Positions 5,865 to 45,217 of a stretch of 64,000 nucleotides of DNA are shown here, in pieces. The stretch covers positions 62,001-126,000 of the forward strand of contig MCFE01000176.1 in NCBI GenBank assembly GCA_002104905.1, read 5' to 3'. Made by a program: the position numbers and the translations under genes. Positions within the stretch are counted from its first letter, which is position 1; the number at the start of each line of letters is the position of its first letter. Source of the DNA: Basidiobolus meristosporus CBS 931.73. Lineage: Eukaryota > Fungi > Basidiobolomycota. The notes beneath the pieces were generated by a model that was not told the origin of the DNA, did no database searches, and saw only the letters and a program-made list of their open reading frames with translations.

Positions 5865-6830
5865 TGTTGCAATTTAAGAAGTGATCTGGATACAACTAGC
5901 TTATCAAGAAATAGTGATAATAGTTGAGCTGTGATTTATTCATAAAGAGGATCAGTATTTAGATCATTGTAGAAGTAATACAGCTGAAGCACTAGGTAAG
6001 GAGGGTTTCTGATCATTCCTAAGCATTCTGTGACAGTTTAATAGTTAGTGCATAATGTTTGGTAAACAGTGTTAATTTGATCTTGACCATAGGGAAATAA
6101 TCATAGGATCATAGATCTTAAGAAACTGGCAAAGTTGGAGCTGCAAATTAGTCCAACAGTGACCATACTAGTCTAGATTTGTTAAGTGAATTTTCATCTG
6201 CTGAATGATACCAAATAATTCAGTATTTCATCACTCCCCCTCAACTTAGCAATTTCTTTATCTTAATTCCTCTCTGCAAGTATCTAACTGCGGTCTAGTT
6301 AGTGGTCTTGTCAATATATCTGCTACCATCCAGTCAGTTGGACAGTAAACTAACACTACTCAGTTATTTTCTTCAGCTTCCCTCACAAATTGGTGTTGTA
6401 TATCTATGTGCTTAGTTCTGGCATGATTAGTAGGATTCCTAGCTAATGAAATACAACTTTGATTATCATTGTGAGCGCATATTGGTTCATCTGAATTAAA
6501 GCCAGAGTCTTTAAATAAATCTGTAACAATATGGCCTGCTTAGTTGCTTGGCAAGCAACCATATATTCAGCTTTGGTTGTGGATAGGGCCACAGCAGGTT
6601 GTTTCATGCAACTTCAAGTCACAGCTTCACCAGCATAAAAAAATAAATACACAGCTGTAGAGCATATGTTTATCAGATCTTTACCCCAATCTGAATCACT
6701 ATAAACATGAAGTTTTTGCCAATTAGTTGCTCCTGAGTATTCTAGTACCATACTTCTGGTACCTTGTAGATATATGGAGACCTACTTAACTAAGCCAACA
6801 CCTTGTAGTGCAACCTAGCTTGTGTGACTG
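5865..6830 (-). mobile_element. 3' end of Ty1/copia element (RT tail, RNase H, PPT, 369-bp C1 3' LTR 5865-6233)
   Basis: Minus translation DNQSCISLARNPTNHARTKHIDIQHQFVRE..VADILTRPL; PPT GAGGGGGAG abutting the LTR. Confidence 0.9.
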
Positions 6831-36899: not shown

Positions 36900-38560
36900 T
36901 CATCAATCCCATCACTACCACTGGATTTCCTTTTGACACATTGGAGGAGACCTATACCAAGTACTGTGGACCATCTACCCTGATCAACTCAAGGAGATCC
37001 CTTGTTAAGCTTCTCTGATATTACAAGAACTATTGCCCTACAAGGTTTCAACCCACCATCTATGGCAACAGAAGTACTTGAAGCCTTCATTCCCAGCTGA
37101 CAGCAATGGAGAACTACCTTGCGGAGGGTATAAATGTTTTGCTGCTAAGCTGCTGTTCCTGTGGCTTGAGGCATATATTGAAGTCATCTTTTGCTGGGAG
37201 GCTTTACTACTGGCAATGATAGCAGGGTAGACTATATTGGTAAGGCACACAGGTTGGTTCCTTAGCATGTCTGTCTTCAAATTGGCTAACTCTGTATTCT
37301 GGTAGTATGTAAACTTGTTGAATCTTCACTCAAACATCCAAGAAAATTGCATTGATCCATGTAGAGCAGCAATCTTGGTGTTAATAGCACACTGTATAGT
37401 AAGAATGTACTTGACCCAATCCTTTGTGATACCTTTTATCAGTTTCCTGATAATGCTCACTCAGGTTAGAACATGTCTTTCAGCAAGTCCATGGCATTGG
37501 GATGATATGGAGTAATTAGATGGTGATCAATGTCACTATTCTGGCAATGGGATTTGATCACAAAACTCACAAGTTATGTTCCATTACCTGATTGAAGGAT
37601 CTTGGGGAACCCAAAGAGGCAGAAGTGCGTTGAAGATTGCTTGTGCAATAGTGGCATCATACTTGTATGGGATAGCTTTGAGGATAACAAGGCATGAGCA
37701 GACATCCATAATCACAAAGAGGTAGTGATTGCCATCATCACTAGTGGTGAAAGGTCCAGCTAGATCAATGGCAATATGATCCATAGGAAGGCCTACATGG
37801 ATAGGACTCATAGAGTGAAATCCATGGCAGCTGATATTGTAAAGCTGACATTCTCTGCAAGACTTGATCAACTGTAGGCAGTTAGCTTTGATATTTGGCC
37901 AGTGATATCTATCAGAGTGTAGCTTCTTCATAAGGGTGTCAGCTCCAAAGTGGCCAAGTAAATGACTCCACTGCATCAATGTTGTCCTTTCATCTGCAGG
38001 GGGAACTTTCCAAGTTACTGAGTCCAATAGAGGATTATTTTGAAGTTGTAGTGTGTTCACTGATTATGTCAGTAATCACATGTCCCTCCCAAGGTGAAAT
38101 TGGAAAATGTCTTTCAAGGTGGTCAGGCAGAATCTTGGGAATTCCTGGGCAATGAGCAACTTTATGTTCATAATCAAGTAGGGTATCAAGCCAGTTGTTG
38201 AGCATTAGAGTCAGAGTATTTTGAACCTGGATATAGACAAGGTCTTGGTGGTAAGTGTACAAGGTAAAAGGGTAACCCATAGATACTGATGAAATGTCTT
38301 CAAGGCAAAGACTATAGCAAGTGGAATTACAAATTATTACAACAAGTATATGGGTGGAGGTACAAAGGTGATAGCAGTAGGGTCTATGTGAGTTTTATCA
38401 ATTGTTAATCTAAGCACAGTAGTAGATAGTATCTGATGAACTTGTAGTATATCATGCTATACTGAGCCATTGAAACTATAGTAAGAATACATGGCCCAGG
38501 TTTTGAGGACATCTGGCTTCAAGTGTAGCCAAAGCACCTAGCATGCAGACTTCAGTGATT
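36900..38560 (-). mobile_element. Ty3/gypsy pol fragment G3 (RNase H and integrase)
   Basis: FTLYTYHQDLVY..WLDTLLDYE; HLLGHFGADTL..HWPNIKANC..CRECQ; HIAIDLAGPF. Confidence 0.88.
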
Positions 38561-39076: not shown

Positions 39077-39508
39077 TTATCAGATGAACCTAAACGGCAT
39101 TTGGATTCGTGGTACGGCTAAGAAAATTTTTCACCCAAAATCCCCGAAACCTTCCAACACCGCGTCCATATACACACGAAACTATCAGATCTCTCCACGC
39201 CCCTCACACACACTCTCTCTCCCCCCCCATCCGTTTTGTACCACCGATGGGTGACTGATCCGTTGGGTGTGCGTGAGAATTCGGCCGGATCCGAAGTCCA
39301 CTTGGGAAGGGAGTCGCCACATCGAAGAAAAATGCCAAATGCGATAGGGTGGGCTGGTTGGGGGGAGGAGATAATCAGTCGGGTTACACCGACGAGCCAG
39401 TGTCCCGCGTTGGTCATGGTTTATCTGATTCTCGAGCGAAAATCCGACTTGGTCTAGTCCCTGGTCGACCGGAGGGTATAAATAGCCGGGGAGGTCCGAC
39501 TATCTGAT
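39077..39508. promoter_or_regulatory. Four ATCWGATAR boxes (SreA/Fep1-type iron-repressor sites) upstream of the GPI gene
   Basis: Minus-strand ATCTGATAA 39077-39085, ATCTGATAG 39182-39190, ATCAGATAA 39421-39429, ATCAGATAG 39500-39508; extra AGATAA 39369-39374. Confidence 0.75.
39477..39484 (+). promoter_or_regulatory. TATA box
   Basis: TATAAATA ~80 nt upstream of ATG 39564. Confidence 0.7.
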
Positions 39509-39563
39509 CCTCACACCACTGGTATCCTTCGCCATCCACACCGTCTACATCCCCAGCATCAAC

Positions 39564-40172
39564 ATGCGTTTCACTTCCGCTTTGTTCCTTGCCGTCGCCG
39601 CGGTCTCCGCACAAACTTCGGAGTTCAACGTTCCCAGCCCCAGTGAATGCATCAGCTCCTGCAACCAGCAAGGCTCCGCTGGCCTCATCGAGGGCTTCTC
39701 CGCCGACCCCAAGAGTCCCAACTTCGTGGCCTCTTTGGGTTTGTTGTGTGAGAAGGGGCCCAACTACGGCAAGTTCATGGCGGTTGCTGGTATGTGCATG
39801 ACCAAGTGCGCTAAGGAGGAGCAAGATGCTTTCATGACATACCACACCAGCGCCTGCGCTTGGTACCAAGCTAACAAGGATGCCGCCCCCACTTCCAGTG
39901 TCGATGCTTCCGTCACCCCCACCGGTGCTTCTTCATCCGCCTCCAGCGCTGCCCCATCTGTCTCCCCCTCCGCATCCGCTTCCTCTCAACCTGCAGGTAC
40001 CACTGGTGCCTCCAGCCCAACCCAAAAGCCAACCGGATCCTCCAGTGAGGCCTTGAATCCCTCCAGCGCTGCCACCCAAACCCCCAAGCCCACCTCCGGC
40101 GCCAACGAACTGAAGCAAGGAGCCATGGCCCTTCTCGGTGGAGCGGCCGTCGCCCTGTTCGCTTTCTTCTAA
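39564..40172 (+). CDS. Secreted, probably GPI-anchored Cys-rich (CFEM-like) surface protein with Ser/Thr/Pro stalk, 202 aa
   Basis: Signal peptide MRFTSALFLAVAAVSA; six-Cys domain; S/T/P/A-rich stalk; hydrophobic C-terminus AMALLGGAAVALFAFF; AATAAA at 40251. Confidence 0.9.
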   Translation: MRFTSALFLAVAAVSAQTSEFNVPSPSECISSCNQQGSAGLIEGFSADPKSPNFVASLGLLCEKGPNYGKFMAVAGMCMTKCAKEEQDAFMTYHTSACAWYQANKDAAPTSSVDASVTPTGASSSASSAAPSVSPSASASSQPAGTTGASSPTQKPTGSSSEALNPSSAATQTPKPTSGANELKQGAMALLGGAAVALFAFF

Positions 40173-40545
40173 ACCCTCACCCCATCCCTCACCTTACATC
40201 CCATTAATACAAGCGTACCCATGCATTAATCCTGATCCCACTCAATCATGAATAAAGTATTTGCCCTCGATGCACGAACCAAATTTCCGTCCGTCTTCGA
40301 ACGAACTCTATTTCCAAGCCCTCCACCTGGCCAATCCGGTGGGGCGGATCTCGTGGCCAATGACAACCCGAGCGCCTACACATGTTTGGATCGCCCTGTG
40401 CTAGGAGGTGGTGGTGAAATGGGATGCGGTTGGTGTGATTGGGTTCGGGGGAGGGGGACGACCGGGGGAGGATTCGAAGCACAACATGGGTTAATTTAAT
40501 GGCGGCGAGTTTATTGAATCTCCTTGGGACATGGGGGGGAGACAT

Positions 40546-41181
40546 CTATTCGAACCGGGATCTCAACCCGAATCGGATCTGGTCGCGTACGTGGTTCAGG
40601 AAGGATCCCTGAGCGACGGAGGGGTCGGTGCGGTGGTAGACCTCCGGGCTGATGGGGCCGATGTAGTGGAACCCGCCGAACCCACCGATCCAGTAGATAC
40701 GATCCACGTGGAGTCGGTAGAACCGGAAGTCGTGTCCGCGCGGCCACCTTCTGGCCTCGGGGTGTTTGTTGTAGAAGCATTCGCGGAGTTCTTGGGATCT
40801 ACGGTTGAGCTCCTCCGCAGGGATGGGTCGTATCTCACCCATCAAGGTGAAGCGCGCGTGGGGCATGGGGGACTGGCTGGTGGAGTTCAGCTGGGTTTGA
40901 ATGGCCAGCGCAGCCCGTGGACTCTGGTGGAAGTTCCTCACGGTGACTTGCATTGAGGAGAGGTACAACACGGGATCCCCGTTGCTGGGGCAATCGTCCG
41001 CGAAGTAGTCCACTGATCCGAAGGGCTGTCCGTCTGGGTAGGTGGTGATCAGGGTGCCCATCCCGTAAGAATGTACCATCTGGCGAGCCAGCACCGCCGC
41101 CTCCTCCTCGGTTTTCTCTCCGGCGGCCAGGCTGCTGATTAGGGCAAGAAAGTAGATTCCAAGTGACAGGAGACGCATCAT
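40546..41181 (-). CDS. CREG-family split-barrel (pyridoxamine 5'-phosphate oxidase-like) secreted protein, 211 aa
   Basis: Signal peptide; ARQMV..GTLITT..PFGSVDYFAD..ARFTLMG..HPEARRW..IYWIGGFGG typical of CREG. Confidence 0.88.
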   Translation of the reverse strand: MMRLLSLGIYFLALISSLAAGEKTEEEAAVLARQMVHSYGMGTLITTYPDGQPFGSVDYFADDCPSNGDPVLYLSSMQVTVRNFHQSPRAALAIQTQLNSTSQSPMPHARFTLMGEIRPIPAEELNRRSQELRECFYNKHPEARRWPRGHDFRFYRLHVDRIYWIGGFGGFHYIGPISPEVYHRTDPSVAQGSFLNHVRDQIRFGLRSRFE

Positions 41182-41248
41182 CTTGGCCTTCCCTCCTACT
41201 TCGTCCCCTCCTTTATACTTGGCTGGATGGTAGGTAACGTGATCGCTG

Positions 41249-41328
41249 ATCAGATAATTCCCATGATTTCTTCCCTCACAAAACAGCCATTGGTTTCATC
41301 TGATAAGCTCGCCTAATTATCAGATGAA
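41249..41328. promoter_or_regulatory. Three ATCWGATAA boxes upstream of the CREG-like gene, two forming a 12-bp inverted repeat
   Basis: ATCAGATAA 41249-41257; TTCATCTGATAA 41295-41306, N10, TTATCAGATGAA 41317-41328. Confidence 0.8.
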
Positions 41329-41652: not shown

Positions 41653-42154
41653 ATGAGCCGCAAGAAGGTGACCCAAGATTTCTTCTCCTCCTGCCCGGAG
41701 CCGACGGAAAACCAGATATTCGCCAGGGTGGTGGGCCCGAGAGGGAAGAATTTACACGAGGTGGAGCTGACCGATGGTCAGGTGGTGTTGGTGTCCCTCC
41801 CCTCCAGGTATCGAAACCTGGTCTACGTCAAGAGGGGACACTATGTCATCGTGGAGCCCATCAAGAACAACGACACGAAGATCTTCGCCGATATCGTATA
41901 CGTGCTGTTCCCCAACCACGTCAAAGATTTGCAGACCAAGGGGCTGTTCCCCGCGGAGTTTTCTTGGTAGGTTCCAAGTGGTTGTGCATACTCTGACCAC
42001 CCCACCGTACTAATCCCCCTCCCTTGATTCCCCTTGCAGCGAGAAAGAGGACTCCTCCTCGGACGACGACGACCTACTATTCCACAACCCCAACCACACG
42101 GTAGCGACCGACTCTAGCGACGACTCGGAAGGGGAGTCGGACGAGGAAGACTGA
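41653..42154 (+). CDS. EIF1AD: eIF1A-domain (S1/OB) RNA-binding protein; intron 41967-42039
   Basis: ARVVGPRGKNLHEV..VSLPSRYRNLVYVKRGHYV; spliced acidic tail SDDDDLLFHNPNH..EED. Confidence 0.9.
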
Positions 42155-42399: not shown

Positions 42400-45217
42400 T
42401 TATACTGGCTTCAACTCGAACAGTAGCTCGTACGTGTTCAAGTTGGCGATGGAGACGTTCAGGATGGTTCCGACTGGTAGAGGGCCATCACATTCCAATC
42501 TACCTTGCACTCCAAAGTCCGTAAGAGTGGCACCAATATGCTCGTCATCGACGGCGGAGGTGACCACTGCTTGGTAGACTCGATCGGGATGCTCAGTCCT
42601 CATTCTCTGTAGGAACTCGAGTGACCAGAACCTGTTGGTGCGCTGTTCAAGCATCCGCATATCCTTCTCCATTCTTCGCAGCTTCATGGGCAACCTCTCG
42701 AGCGTTTCCTTTTCGAAAGGGAACTTGCGATTCAGGAAGTGTGCCTTGAGCTGCCAGTGGCTGATCAGGTCCACGTATCTTCTCAAGGGGGAGGTCACCT
42801 TGGTGTACCCGTTGGCGATACCCATGGACCAGTGCAGGCCTGGCTCAAGTGAGATGTTGGCTGAGGGCAAGTATTCTCTGATCTTGCTCTGCTCAACAAA
42901 AGAGAGCATCCCACTGTTGGGATCGACCTTGGCCAGAACCTGGTCGATCAGATCCATCGGTGCTTTGGTGGCATCTGGCGCGTCTTGGGAGCGATACAAG
43001 GTGGGGATGCTCCTCTCTTGCATATACAATGCCGCCACCTTCCCGGCCATAATCATAAACTCGGCAACCATCTGATGAGAGGCAGAGTACGAGCTGTTGT
43101 CCACGCTCAACTCGATTTGGGGGAGTTTCGGGAACACCCTTGGCTGGGCCGGTATCTCCGATGCCATGGGCAGTGGGAACGGGTTCACGAACAGGTTGGC
43201 TCGAGGGATGTTGGTGGAGAAAGCGCCTTTCTTGACCCGCTGTCGGAAGTGTCTCAACGAGTGCTCTTGCATCTCTTTTAGGATATCGTGGGCGGCCTCT
43301 GGAACGGTGTTTTCACGTGACTTGTGGACTAGAGGCTTGGAGCCGTTCGGGTGAATATAGTTTTTCTCTTCGCCTTGGCCTTCCCATTCGCCAACAGGTT
43401 TGAACACGGGCGCGATGACATGGTCCACATCCTCGTAGAGCATGGAGCGCACGTTGTGCACTAGTCCGGGTCGGATCATTGGGTCCTGAAGGCTTCCATC
43501 CTCAGCGATTCTGAAGCTGAAGGTGAGCGTGGGGTTCCCATGCTCGCTGGCACCTTTCTCCAGACTGAACACCTCCTTACCGATCACAGTAGGGAGAAGC
43601 GGGAACTGGCGCTCAGGCAGATACACACTCTGGACTCTGTCCTGGGCAATCTGGGAGAGTCGGTGGTTTGGTGGAATGATGCAAGTGGGATCAGCGACGT
43701 GTACATGGAACCATGTTTGGTCCCCACGTTTCTCCATGGAGATACCGTCATCGATTTCGAAGGCGGTGGGGTCGTCGATTGTATACACGGGCAAGTCCCC
43801 GAAATCGTGTCTAATGTGCTCACACAAGTCTCGGGTGTAGAAGGTGTCAGAGCTCATCTCGGGCTCTGCTCTGATGGCAGCGGAGGAGCCTTGCCAGTTC
43901 TTCTGCTTCTTCAGGATGGCCTGCTTCTCTCCTCCATGCAACAGGTCGGTAATGGGTATCTCGGAGATTTGCTCCGCATACAGCTTGCTCTCCATTTCCG
44001 TCTGGTCGGCCTCTTTGGAGGTACCAATCCCCCACAAGGGCACTGGTGTCTCAAAAAGGTTGGTATTCTCCCAGGGAGACCAAACGCCGATATCCTGGAG
44101 GAAACGAACGACGGTGTCCACTTCGATGTCGCCGTACACCTTCAAGGGCTTTAGGAGAGAAGGAACAACCACAGTGTAAGGGTTTGTGCACAGACGGTTG
44201 TATGAAGTGACATAGTTTCTCAAGAAACGAATGAACAAAAGATCGTCCGGGTTGAAGGTGACATCACGCAGAGCATTCCGGAGGCTCTTGGCATCCTTCG
44301 TTGTCGCCTTGATCTCGATCACCTTCTTGCACTTCTCAACGAAAGCAGCCACAGTTGGGTCCTGCTGGCGCACGCGATTGATGACGTTCTGGATCACCTT
44401 GACGTCCGACTCGGGGCGTAGAAAGATCTCCTCCGAGAAGCGTAGCACGGTCTTGTCGGCTACGAAACGGATCCCGTCTTTGACCAGAAACAGGTACACC
44501 GCGTAGATATCCAACGGAGTGGGCTTCCTCTGGTACAACTCGGTGGCGATTTCGCGGATCATCAAGCTCGATTCCTTCTGCAGGATTCTCTTGTTCTGAT
44601 AAAGCTTCTGCAACGGCATGAGCTTCTGCCACTGCACTCTGATGGCCTTTCTCTGGAAGGTTACGATGGCCCGGGTCAGGTCATCGGTTATCTCCTCTAT
44701 GGGGGTGTCCAGGGGTAGCGAGATACCCAACTCCTCGGCGGAGCAGGCGAAAAAGTCCTGTCGGGATATCCGGAAAGTCACGTCGTTGGTGCGAAACATT
44801 TTGCGGTACCCGTTAAATAGTATGGCCTCGTTAGCGCCCATACCGCTGGATAAACTGGTCACAACTCCTAGAAAACTCTTCTCGAATCTGCATGTGTGAT
44901 CAAGGCAAGAAAGTCAGTGAAACCGAGCCACTCGCGCCAACCAGATAGAAAGCTCACCTTCTCAGCTCGACCAAGTCTCCAACCTCGAGCTTGATATCAC
45001 CATACTCCTCAGGATGGGACAGCTCGTCGCTGGTAGCGGTAATGCTACTCTTGTCGAAATCCTCGGCGACGGTGGAGGCCTGTCGCGCGCCAAGCACCGA
45101 AGGTCTGGGTAGAGTGGGTACGGAAATTCTCCCAGAAGGAAGTGCGCTGCGCTTCAAGCTGGCGTTGAGAAAGCTGCGTGAAGCGATCCTTGGGGTTGTC
45201 CTCAGTAAACGGAGCAT
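42400..45217 (-). CDS. DSS1: Mitochondrial RNase II/RNB exoribonuclease (Dss1/Cyt-4-like); intron 44888-44957
   Basis: Arg-rich targeting peptide MLRLLRTTPRIASRS; YTIDDPTAFEIDDGIS; HVHVADP; VTSPLRRYVDL. Confidence 0.85.

Follow-up and report, generated by a model that had tools for sequence, protein, structure and literature searches.

Promoter boxes and transporter synteny suggest an uncharacterised iron (possibly heme) uptake system around an unnamed family of fungal surface proteins

In Saccharomyces cerevisiae, the wall mannoproteins FIT1-3 work with the ARN/SIT siderophore transporters of the major facilitator superfamily (MFS), and in Schizosaccharomyces pombe the glycosylphosphatidylinositol (GPI)-anchored protein Shu1 and the MFS protein Str3 serve heme. 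The PRA1-ZRT1 pair of Candida albicans, a zincophore and a transporter, is read from one divergent promoter under metal control, and its synteny persists across fungi. Here we describe two genes of Basidiobolus meristosporus CBS 931.73 that lie in a 64-kb window of contig MCFE01000176.1 (positions 62,001 to 126,000), to which all coordinates below refer unless another locus is named. Gene 1 (39564-40172, + strand) encodes a predicted GPI-anchored surface protein of an unnamed fungal family and gene 2 (40546-41181, - strand) a predicted secreted protein of the CREG family. Copies of the sequence ATCWGATAR, hereafter boxes, are clustered upstream of both. Our best overall explanation, which we consider probable from the promoter sequences and synteny, is that both genes belong to an iron-starvation regulon in which the gene-1 family captures an iron-bearing ligand.

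The motif ATCWGATAA is over-represented in the Aspergillus fumigatus SreA regulon, and in vivo binding sites of the Ustilago maydis and S. pombe SreA orthologues comply with it (PMC2610380), in agreement with the initial annotation of this DNA, which had recognized in the boxes the consensus of iron-sensing GATA repressors. Beyond Dikarya, the motif is so far known only from an in silico observation at the Mucor gene rfs, which encodes rhizoferrin synthetase (PMC9226013). For Mucor, homologues of SreA have been reported (PMC7011435), as have the GATA factors Znf4 and Znf8 of Rhizopus microsporus (PMC12638772). Iron uptake in Mucorales, Mortierellomycota and Basidiobolus is poorly known beyond FTR1/FET3 and rhizoferrin: in Mucor, a genome comparison turned up FTR1 and no other heme-uptake gene (PMC7011435), and a 2025 review describes hemophores for Dikarya yeasts only (PMC12153323).

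A box cluster at two convergent promoters

A pattern scan of both strands found eight ATCWGATAR sites in the window, of which seven fall within 39077-41325. Four lie upstream of gene 1, all on the - strand (39077, 39182, 39421 and 39500), and three upstream of gene 2 (41249, 41298 and 41317), bearing out the four and three copies that the initial annotation had counted before these convergent genes. It had also seen no comparable cluster before any other gene of the window; the sole remaining site, at 6670, lies inside the AT-rich, transposon-laden first 38.9 kb. The annotation had put the chance expectation at one site per 33 kb, which is right for uniform base composition. The actual background is roughly double, at 3.47 sites expected per 64 kb in dinucleotide shuffles, and the conclusion is unchanged: 0.034 sites are expected in the 631 bp that hold the seven boxes (Poisson P(≥7) ~1e-14). 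Sequences flanking the box copies are mutually unrelated; thus, the cluster is not a repeat family, and we rejected the idea that the boxes are parts of one repeated element. Chance clustering of an AT-rich word devoid of regulatory meaning might be suspected from the shortness of the word and from a whole-window count that is not extreme in itself (8 versus 3.5 expected, with 8 reached in 4 of 100 shuffles). The local clustering probability speaks against this reading, to which we attach almost no credence, and recurrence across species in at least five genomes, described below, effectively refutes it. The box cluster is real and non-random.

The form of the boxes bears on the factor that would use them. 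The ATCW extension precedes seven of the nine GATAR sites of these promoters, versus only 1 of the 206 found in the rest of the window. Early-diverging fungi have an expanded set of GATA factors, which bind similar regions in Rhizopus (PMC12638772), and the boxes might accordingly serve another member of the class, such as a nitrogen regulator of the AreA type, a light regulator of the white-collar type or a developmental factor, with the two genes unrelated to iron. AreA-type factors, however, need HGATAR only, whereas the partial palindrome formed by the ATCW extension is typical of two-finger iron repressors (PMC2610380), and we consider regulation by another GATA factor quite unlikely. Genes 1 and 2 are instead likely targets of a putative SreA-type iron repressor, and their predicted repression by iron is well supported in silico. 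With sufficient iron, a two-finger GATA repressor of the SreA/Fep1/Urbs1 class would occupy the ATCWGATAA boxes and keep both genes silent; under iron starvation it would leave the boxes and the genes would come on.

The boxes appear to bracket each TATA box. In the gene 1 promoter, box 1 (ATCTGATAA, 39077..39085, - strand) stands at -487 from the ATG, followed by box 2 (ATCTGATAG, 39182..39190, - strand) and by box 3 (ATCAGATAA, 39421..39429, - strand), which lies ~50 bp upstream of a TATAAA box (39477..39482, + strand) that is itself 87 bp before the ATG. Box 4 (ATCAGATAG, 39500..39508, - strand) is 18 bp downstream of the TATA box, approximately at the expected transcription start. The gene 2 promoter has its TATAAA box (41212..41217, - strand) ~31-36 bp before the ATG. 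Box 1 of this promoter (ATCAGATAA, 41249..41257, + strand) is ~32 bp upstream of the TATA box, with box 2 (ATCTGATAA, 41298..41306, + strand) and box 3 (ATCTGATAA, 41317..41325, - strand) beyond it, the last 26 bp from the position (41351) where contigs of a divergent eIF1A-domain gene start.

Recurrence in other fungi and a transporter partner

Independent box clusters, amid unrelated flanks, stand before orthologues and paralogues in five genomes or more. They are present before the Basidiobolus orthologues of both genes, a point on which the initial annotation had staked its proposal. Three boxes lie in the 310 bp before the start of the Basidiobolus ranarum orthologue of gene 1 (locus L001), and a third paralogue of the family (L005) has two upstream; overall, 6 of 7 gene-1 family promoters contain 2-5 boxes. 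CREG promoters are less uniform, with boxes in 4 of 7, namely all Basidiobolus loci and Actinomortierella. The B. ranarum CREG orthologue has four boxes at -1.0 to -1.4 kb, the B. meristosporus orthologue one at -328 and the Actinomortierella gene one at -206. Membership of CREG in the regulon throughout the fungi was therefore rejected, as promoters of three of the four orthologues from outside Basidiobolus are without boxes. Presence at Basidiobolus CREG genes and not at most others argues that recruitment of CREG into the regulon is Basidiobolus-specific, and from these promoters it looks confined to that lineage. The boxes are often arranged as tandem pairs of the same orientation with starts 12-14 bp apart (L001:3246-3268, L002:1166-1188, L005:2261-2281 and L005:5181-5202), and the base at -1 of ATC is T in just 1 of 44 instances.

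A gene-1 family gene is divergent from an MFS_1 transporter gene, 0.3-1.1 kb apart, in four species of four phyla: B. ranarum (L004:222-3001), Lobosporangium transversale (L006 and L007, the latter at L007:237-3001), Radiomyces spectabilis (L008:440-3001) and Malassezia pachydermatis (L013:1259-3001). The four paired MFS proteins are mutual orthologues with 36-50% identity. The Malassezia and Radiomyces proteins share 50%, unusually high for such phylogenetic distance. Among the prokaryotic NCBIfam families, the best matches are the magnetosome transporters MamZ and MamH, at 5e-16 but far below the family cut-offs. A sequence search of the PDB with the MFS protein was uninformative, and an Atlas search returned generic MFS clusters only. 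Perfect boxes number five in the intergenic region of the B. ranarum pair, two in Lobosporangium and four in Radiomyces.

Pairing with one orthologous MFS protein in four phyla, along with boxes in three of the four promoters, argues that the family captures a ligand for the transporter. Given this synteny, we place a role in extracellular capture at even or slightly above. A gene-1 family protein would capture an iron-bearing ligand outside the cell and pass it to the membrane transporter, the candidate ligands being heme or a ferric chelate such as rhizoferrin. If this is an uptake system, heme and a ferric chelate or iron seem to us equally plausible, each falling a little short of even, with any other ligand about half as plausible as either. 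By tblastn, the MFS partner is absent from the 64-kb window; thus, the window copy of the gene-1 family is without its conserved partner.

The initial annotation had proposed a linked surface receptor and heme-binding protein. This linkage is not conserved, with the B. ranarum orthologues of genes 1 and 2 residing on different contigs. From the loci compared, genes 1 and 2 appear to be neighbours under common regulation rather than a two-gene module kept in evolution; the unit that evolution has conserved would be the pair of gene-1 family and MFS genes, not gene 1 and CREG.

A further family emerged beside these genes. Its members are uncharacterised type I membrane proteins of Basidiobolus, which have two or three Cys-rich repeats, each ~130 aa long, and no Pfam match. 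In both B. ranarum and B. meristosporus, the gene adjoining CREG encodes a two-repeat protein (338/339 aa) and has three boxes upstream, and a three-repeat paralogue in L005, also with three boxes upstream, is convergent with a gene-1 family member. The three genes, at L002:4360-5379, L003:7527-8543 and L005:3466-4620, thus each lie beside CREG or a gene-1 family member; tblastn found no copy of the Cys-repeat gene in the 64-kb window. Collectively, promoters of the gene-1, MFS, CREG and Cys-repeat families in the fetched DNA contain 35 boxes in 14.4 kb (2.43 per kb), a count that is partly circular because the Cys-repeat family was picked out by its boxes, and the remaining 135 kb contain 11 (0.081 per kb).

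Architecture and affinities of the two proteins

Both open reading frames are complete and uninterrupted, and the closest proteins, at 44-59% identity, are from B. ranarum and B. meristosporus. Gene 1 encodes 202 aa in a single exon, with a likely poly(A) signal (AATAAA) read from the sequence at 40250..40255 on the + strand. A hydrophobic signal peptide (aa 1-17) is followed by a four-helix Cys domain (aa 18-105, 39615-39878), a Ser/Thr/Pro/Ala-rich stalk (aa 106-177) and a GPI-type signal (aa 178-202) made of the small residues SGA and then a hydrophobic tail. Of a stretch of 75 aa, 76% is Ser, Thr, Pro or Ala. The product would be a GPI-anchored surface protein whose disulfide-bonded four-helix domain is held off the membrane on a glycosylated Ser/Thr stalk. 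Gene 1 has no Pfam or NCBIfam family match. An exhaustive HMMER search gathered 84 cluster representatives of its family at E≤1e-3, in some of which the domain is repeated in tandem up to six times, and the named members, from Basidiobolus, Apophysomyces, Radiomyces, Backusella, Linnemannia, Lobosporangium and Malassezia, are all annotated as hypothetical. The gene-1 family is an undescribed family of Basidiobolus, Mucorales, Mortierellomycota and Malassezia.

An alignment of 35 sequences showed signal peptide, domain, stalk and GPI tail to be common to the family. Invariant positions are C29, C33, S57, C78 and C82, the cysteines forming two Cx3C pairs, and D48, F54, G76 and W100 are near-invariant, D48 being at most a candidate counterpart of the axial Asp ligand of ferric heme in CFEM. 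Gene 1 has six cysteines and family members have four to eight. The AlphaFold model of the gene 1 domain consists of four helices with a predicted local distance difference test score of 92-98.

The initial annotation had called gene 1 a CFEM-like GPI protein. Signal peptide, Cys domain, Ser/Thr stalk and GPI tail stand, while membership in CFEM does not, and what is left of the CFEM claim is a remote likeness of fold. The Pfam CFEM profile (PF05730) gave no match to gene 1 at E≤1 and none to ten family members at E≤0.1, and just 1 of 35 family domains reached E 0.049. With no profile match, and with cysteines that differ in number and spacing, Pfam CFEM membership of gene 1 and its family was rejected. 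Shape comparisons nonetheless returned CFEM proteins repeatedly. The C. albicans hemophore Csa2 (4Y7S) was the top VIA-align match among Foldseek candidates for the domain, with a Z of just 3.9, and ranked third of 48,161 representative chains (Z 3.8) with 24% identity, by far the highest. In AlphaFold DB clusters, matches beyond the domain's own family were nearly all CFEM proteins, and among Swiss-Prot models five of the seven top matches were CFEM effectors or hemophores (template modelling score 0.43-0.54, E 0.6-5). The nearest named language-model clusters were also CFEM, a score of 0.76 that serves as a lead only. Foldseek of the trimmed domain versus the PDB yielded nothing significant and did not recover Csa2, a sequence-profile search of the PDB with the family gave no meaningful match, and an ESM Atlas shape search returned the domain's own family only. 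Lack of a CFEM sequence match, combined with weak likeness of shape, leads us to call the domain remotely CFEM-like and not CFEM, a modelled resemblance that is weak but consistent.

Gene 2 encodes 211 aa, also in a single exon, comprising a signal peptide (~aa 1-20), a CREG-type split beta-barrel (aa 24-183, 40633-41112) and a short C-terminal tail. The match to Pfam CREG (PF13883) is strong (2e-37, 129 bits versus a cut-off of 27) and spans profile positions 2-166 of 167. The hydrophobic N-terminus, read from the sequence as a signal peptide, is kept in the B. ranarum and B. meristosporus orthologues. A profile search of the PDB recovered, in order, the heme-binding MSMEG_6519 (9e-15), human CREG (1.5e-13; its structure 1XHN scored 8e-13 in another search), PA4388 (1e-12) and AtHOZ1, a heme oxygenase of plants (8.5e-11). 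In a database search, CREG proteins of early-diverging fungi came first, then bacterial HugZ/DUF2470 'heme iron utilization' proteins. By these matches, gene 2 is a true CREG-family split barrel with a predicted secretory route.

The fold and signal peptide of the secreted CREG/HugZ-type protein of the initial annotation were thus upheld, and two hallmarks of HugZ/HOZ were not found. The HOZ/HugZ family is defined by a fused DRI domain (DUF2470), with CREG a separate subfamily that has no known cofactor (PMC11602992). Gene 2 has no DRI domain (PF10615), which bacterial relatives possess, and ends 28 aa after the barrel. The heme-propionate histidine (His135 of AtHOZ1, His136 of HugZ) aligns by HMMER with Met114 of gene 2. 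It is absent too from the heme-binding MSMEG_6519, which makes this residue a weak test. Lacking both the DRI domain and the propionate histidine, gene 2 can be credited with heme binding only as conjecture. The protein, a predicted secreted or vacuolar CREG barrel that would have joined the regulon within the Basidiobolus lineage, could be one that handles tetrapyrroles or flavins.

Sequencing run X3, labelled 'DNA?', covers only 39574-40163, 40534-41084 and 41351 onward (listed to 41700), with ~100% identity and nothing over the promoters or the 3' intergenic region. Restriction to transcribed parts at this identity gives it the look of cDNA from the same organism, and X3 is probably a cDNA library of that organism filed under another organism label. 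For the same reasons, X3 was rejected as a divergent relative for phylogenetic footprinting. If X3 is cDNA, the eIF1A-domain transcript would start at a distance of just 26 bp from the last gene 2 box. In X3, minor-variant 54-mers at 39861-39945 hint that the Ser/Thr stalk of gene 1 varies between alleles or paralogues.

Several of these observations weigh against an iron-starvation uptake system. If X3 is RNA, both genes are transcribed without introns and were not silent in that culture, and the X3 contig depth over both coding regions equals or exceeds that of the housekeeping neighbour. The gene 2 boxes occupy the ~170 bp between its ATG (41181) and the contig start of the eIF1A-domain gene (41351), and because this region is shared by the divergent genes the assignment of target is not unambiguous. 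CREG orthologue promoters of Calcarisporiella, Bifiguratus and Piptocephalis have no boxes, and the intergenic region of the Malassezia pair has near-sites only and no perfect box. Statistical support for the likeness to CFEM is weak (Z below 4, Foldseek E 0.6-5). To these are added the partial circularity of the enrichment count and the sub-threshold MamH/MamZ matches of the transporter.

Some of the same evidence could indicate genes that are regulated by iron yet not devoted to uptake, gene 1 being a wall or adhesion mannoprotein and CREG a lysosomal or vacuolar glycoprotein that act in wall remodelling or stress during iron starvation. In animals, CREG acts in secreted or lysosomal form as a regulator for which no cofactor is known (PMC11602992), CREG orthologues elsewhere are without boxes, no ligand site is established in gene 1, and its nearest neighbours in the language-model comparison also number wall mannoproteins like Tir and CAP22 among them. 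Conversely, a wall protein of purely structural role would not readily account for the link of the gene-1 family to one MFS transporter in four phyla, and the nearest folds of gene 1 are hemophore-type CFEM domains. On balance we regard the wall-remodelling reading as unlikely and favour capture of an iron-bearing ligand, the gene-1 family and MFS pair suggesting an uncharacterised iron (possibly heme) uptake system.

Gene 1 sits at a composition boundary, with AT-rich transposon debris beginning directly upstream of its promoter. GC content steps sharply from 0.37-0.43 in the transposon-rich 1-38900, which holds Ty3/gypsy integrase fragments (e.g., at 37584-38280), to 0.47-0.55 in the gene-rich 38900-60000. 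Beyond gene 2 lie the housekeeping eIF1A-domain (EIF1AD-like) gene (41653-42154), which probably has an intron at ~41968-42039 and whose product ends in an acidic tail, and a gene for an 820-aa RNB-domain exoribonuclease (42400-44862) with a cyt-4-type winged helix, resembling mitochondrial Dss1/cyt-4. Single-base homopolymer length differences from contigs of run X1 occur at 39220, 40533 and 41547 (the last also versus X3). Located in G/C runs and all outside both coding regions, they are likely assembly or sequencing indels.

Relation to described systems

The locus supplies candidates for iron uptake in early-diverging fungi, in the form of an unnamed, widespread GPI family tied to one MFS transporter by synteny and to an iron repressor by boxes, and suggests that the ATCWGATAA iron-repressor code is older than Dikarya. 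The extended box is identical to that of the SreA/Fep1/Urbs1/SRE regulons of Aspergillus, S. pombe and Ustilago, and, as in those regulons, multiple copies are placed near the core promoters of genes for extracellular or membrane proteins of predicted iron acquisition (PMC2610380). The predicted targets here, an unnamed GPI family and CREG, are absent from the Dikarya regulons described so far.

Comparison with the C. albicans CFEM hemophores Rbt5, Pga7 and Csa2 reveals a shared plan of signal peptide, small disulfide-rich helical domain, Ser/Thr stalk and GPI anchor, with expression of gene 1 presumed to be iron-regulated as well. CFEM has an eight-Cys pattern and six helices, whereas gene 1 has six Cys, four of them invariant, and four helices. 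The Candida route proceeds by endocytosis plus Frp1/Frp2 (PMC9635878), in contrast to the linkage of the gene-1 family to an MFS transporter. In its most ambitious form, which we hold to be doubtful as a whole, our proposal would make the gene-1 family and MFS pair an ancient capture-import system for heme or ferric chelate that predates the Dikarya split, an early-diverging counterpart and remote relative of the CFEM relay to which Basidiobolus recruited CREG and the Cys-repeat membrane protein.

Gene 2 shares the split-barrel superfamily with HugZ, HutZ, ChuZ, MSMEG_6519 and plant HOZ, and is as close to MSMEG_6519 as to human CREG. It is unlike HugZ and HOZ in that Pfam places it in CREG and in being a predicted secreted protein, not a cytosolic or plastidial one. 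Diatom CREG-like genes encode low-iron-induced surface proteins (PMC3491386), and, like Phaeodactylum CREG and Thalassiosira oceanica CREGx2, gene 2 would be a secreted CREG-family barrel tied to iron limitation (PMC3491386). Diatoms belong to another kingdom, and the iron response was measured there, whereas here it is predicted from promoter boxes. A literature search for fungal CREG and iron found nothing. Basidiobolus would thus be the second lineage after diatoms with a secreted CREG tied to iron limitation, which could help assign a biochemical function to CREG.

The arrangement proposed here, where a GPI protein induced by iron starvation concentrates an iron ligand for an MFS importer, would parallel FIT1-3 with ARN/SIT and Shu1 with Str3. 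No sequence relationship to FIT1-3 or Shu1 was found, and the MFS protein is MamH/MamZ-like by its best matches and not of the ARN/SIT type. PRA1-ZRT1 differs in metal, protein families and regulator, and in the window itself the MFS partner is missing; the likeness to PRA1-ZRT1 lies in a predicted capture protein and a membrane transporter that share one divergent promoter.

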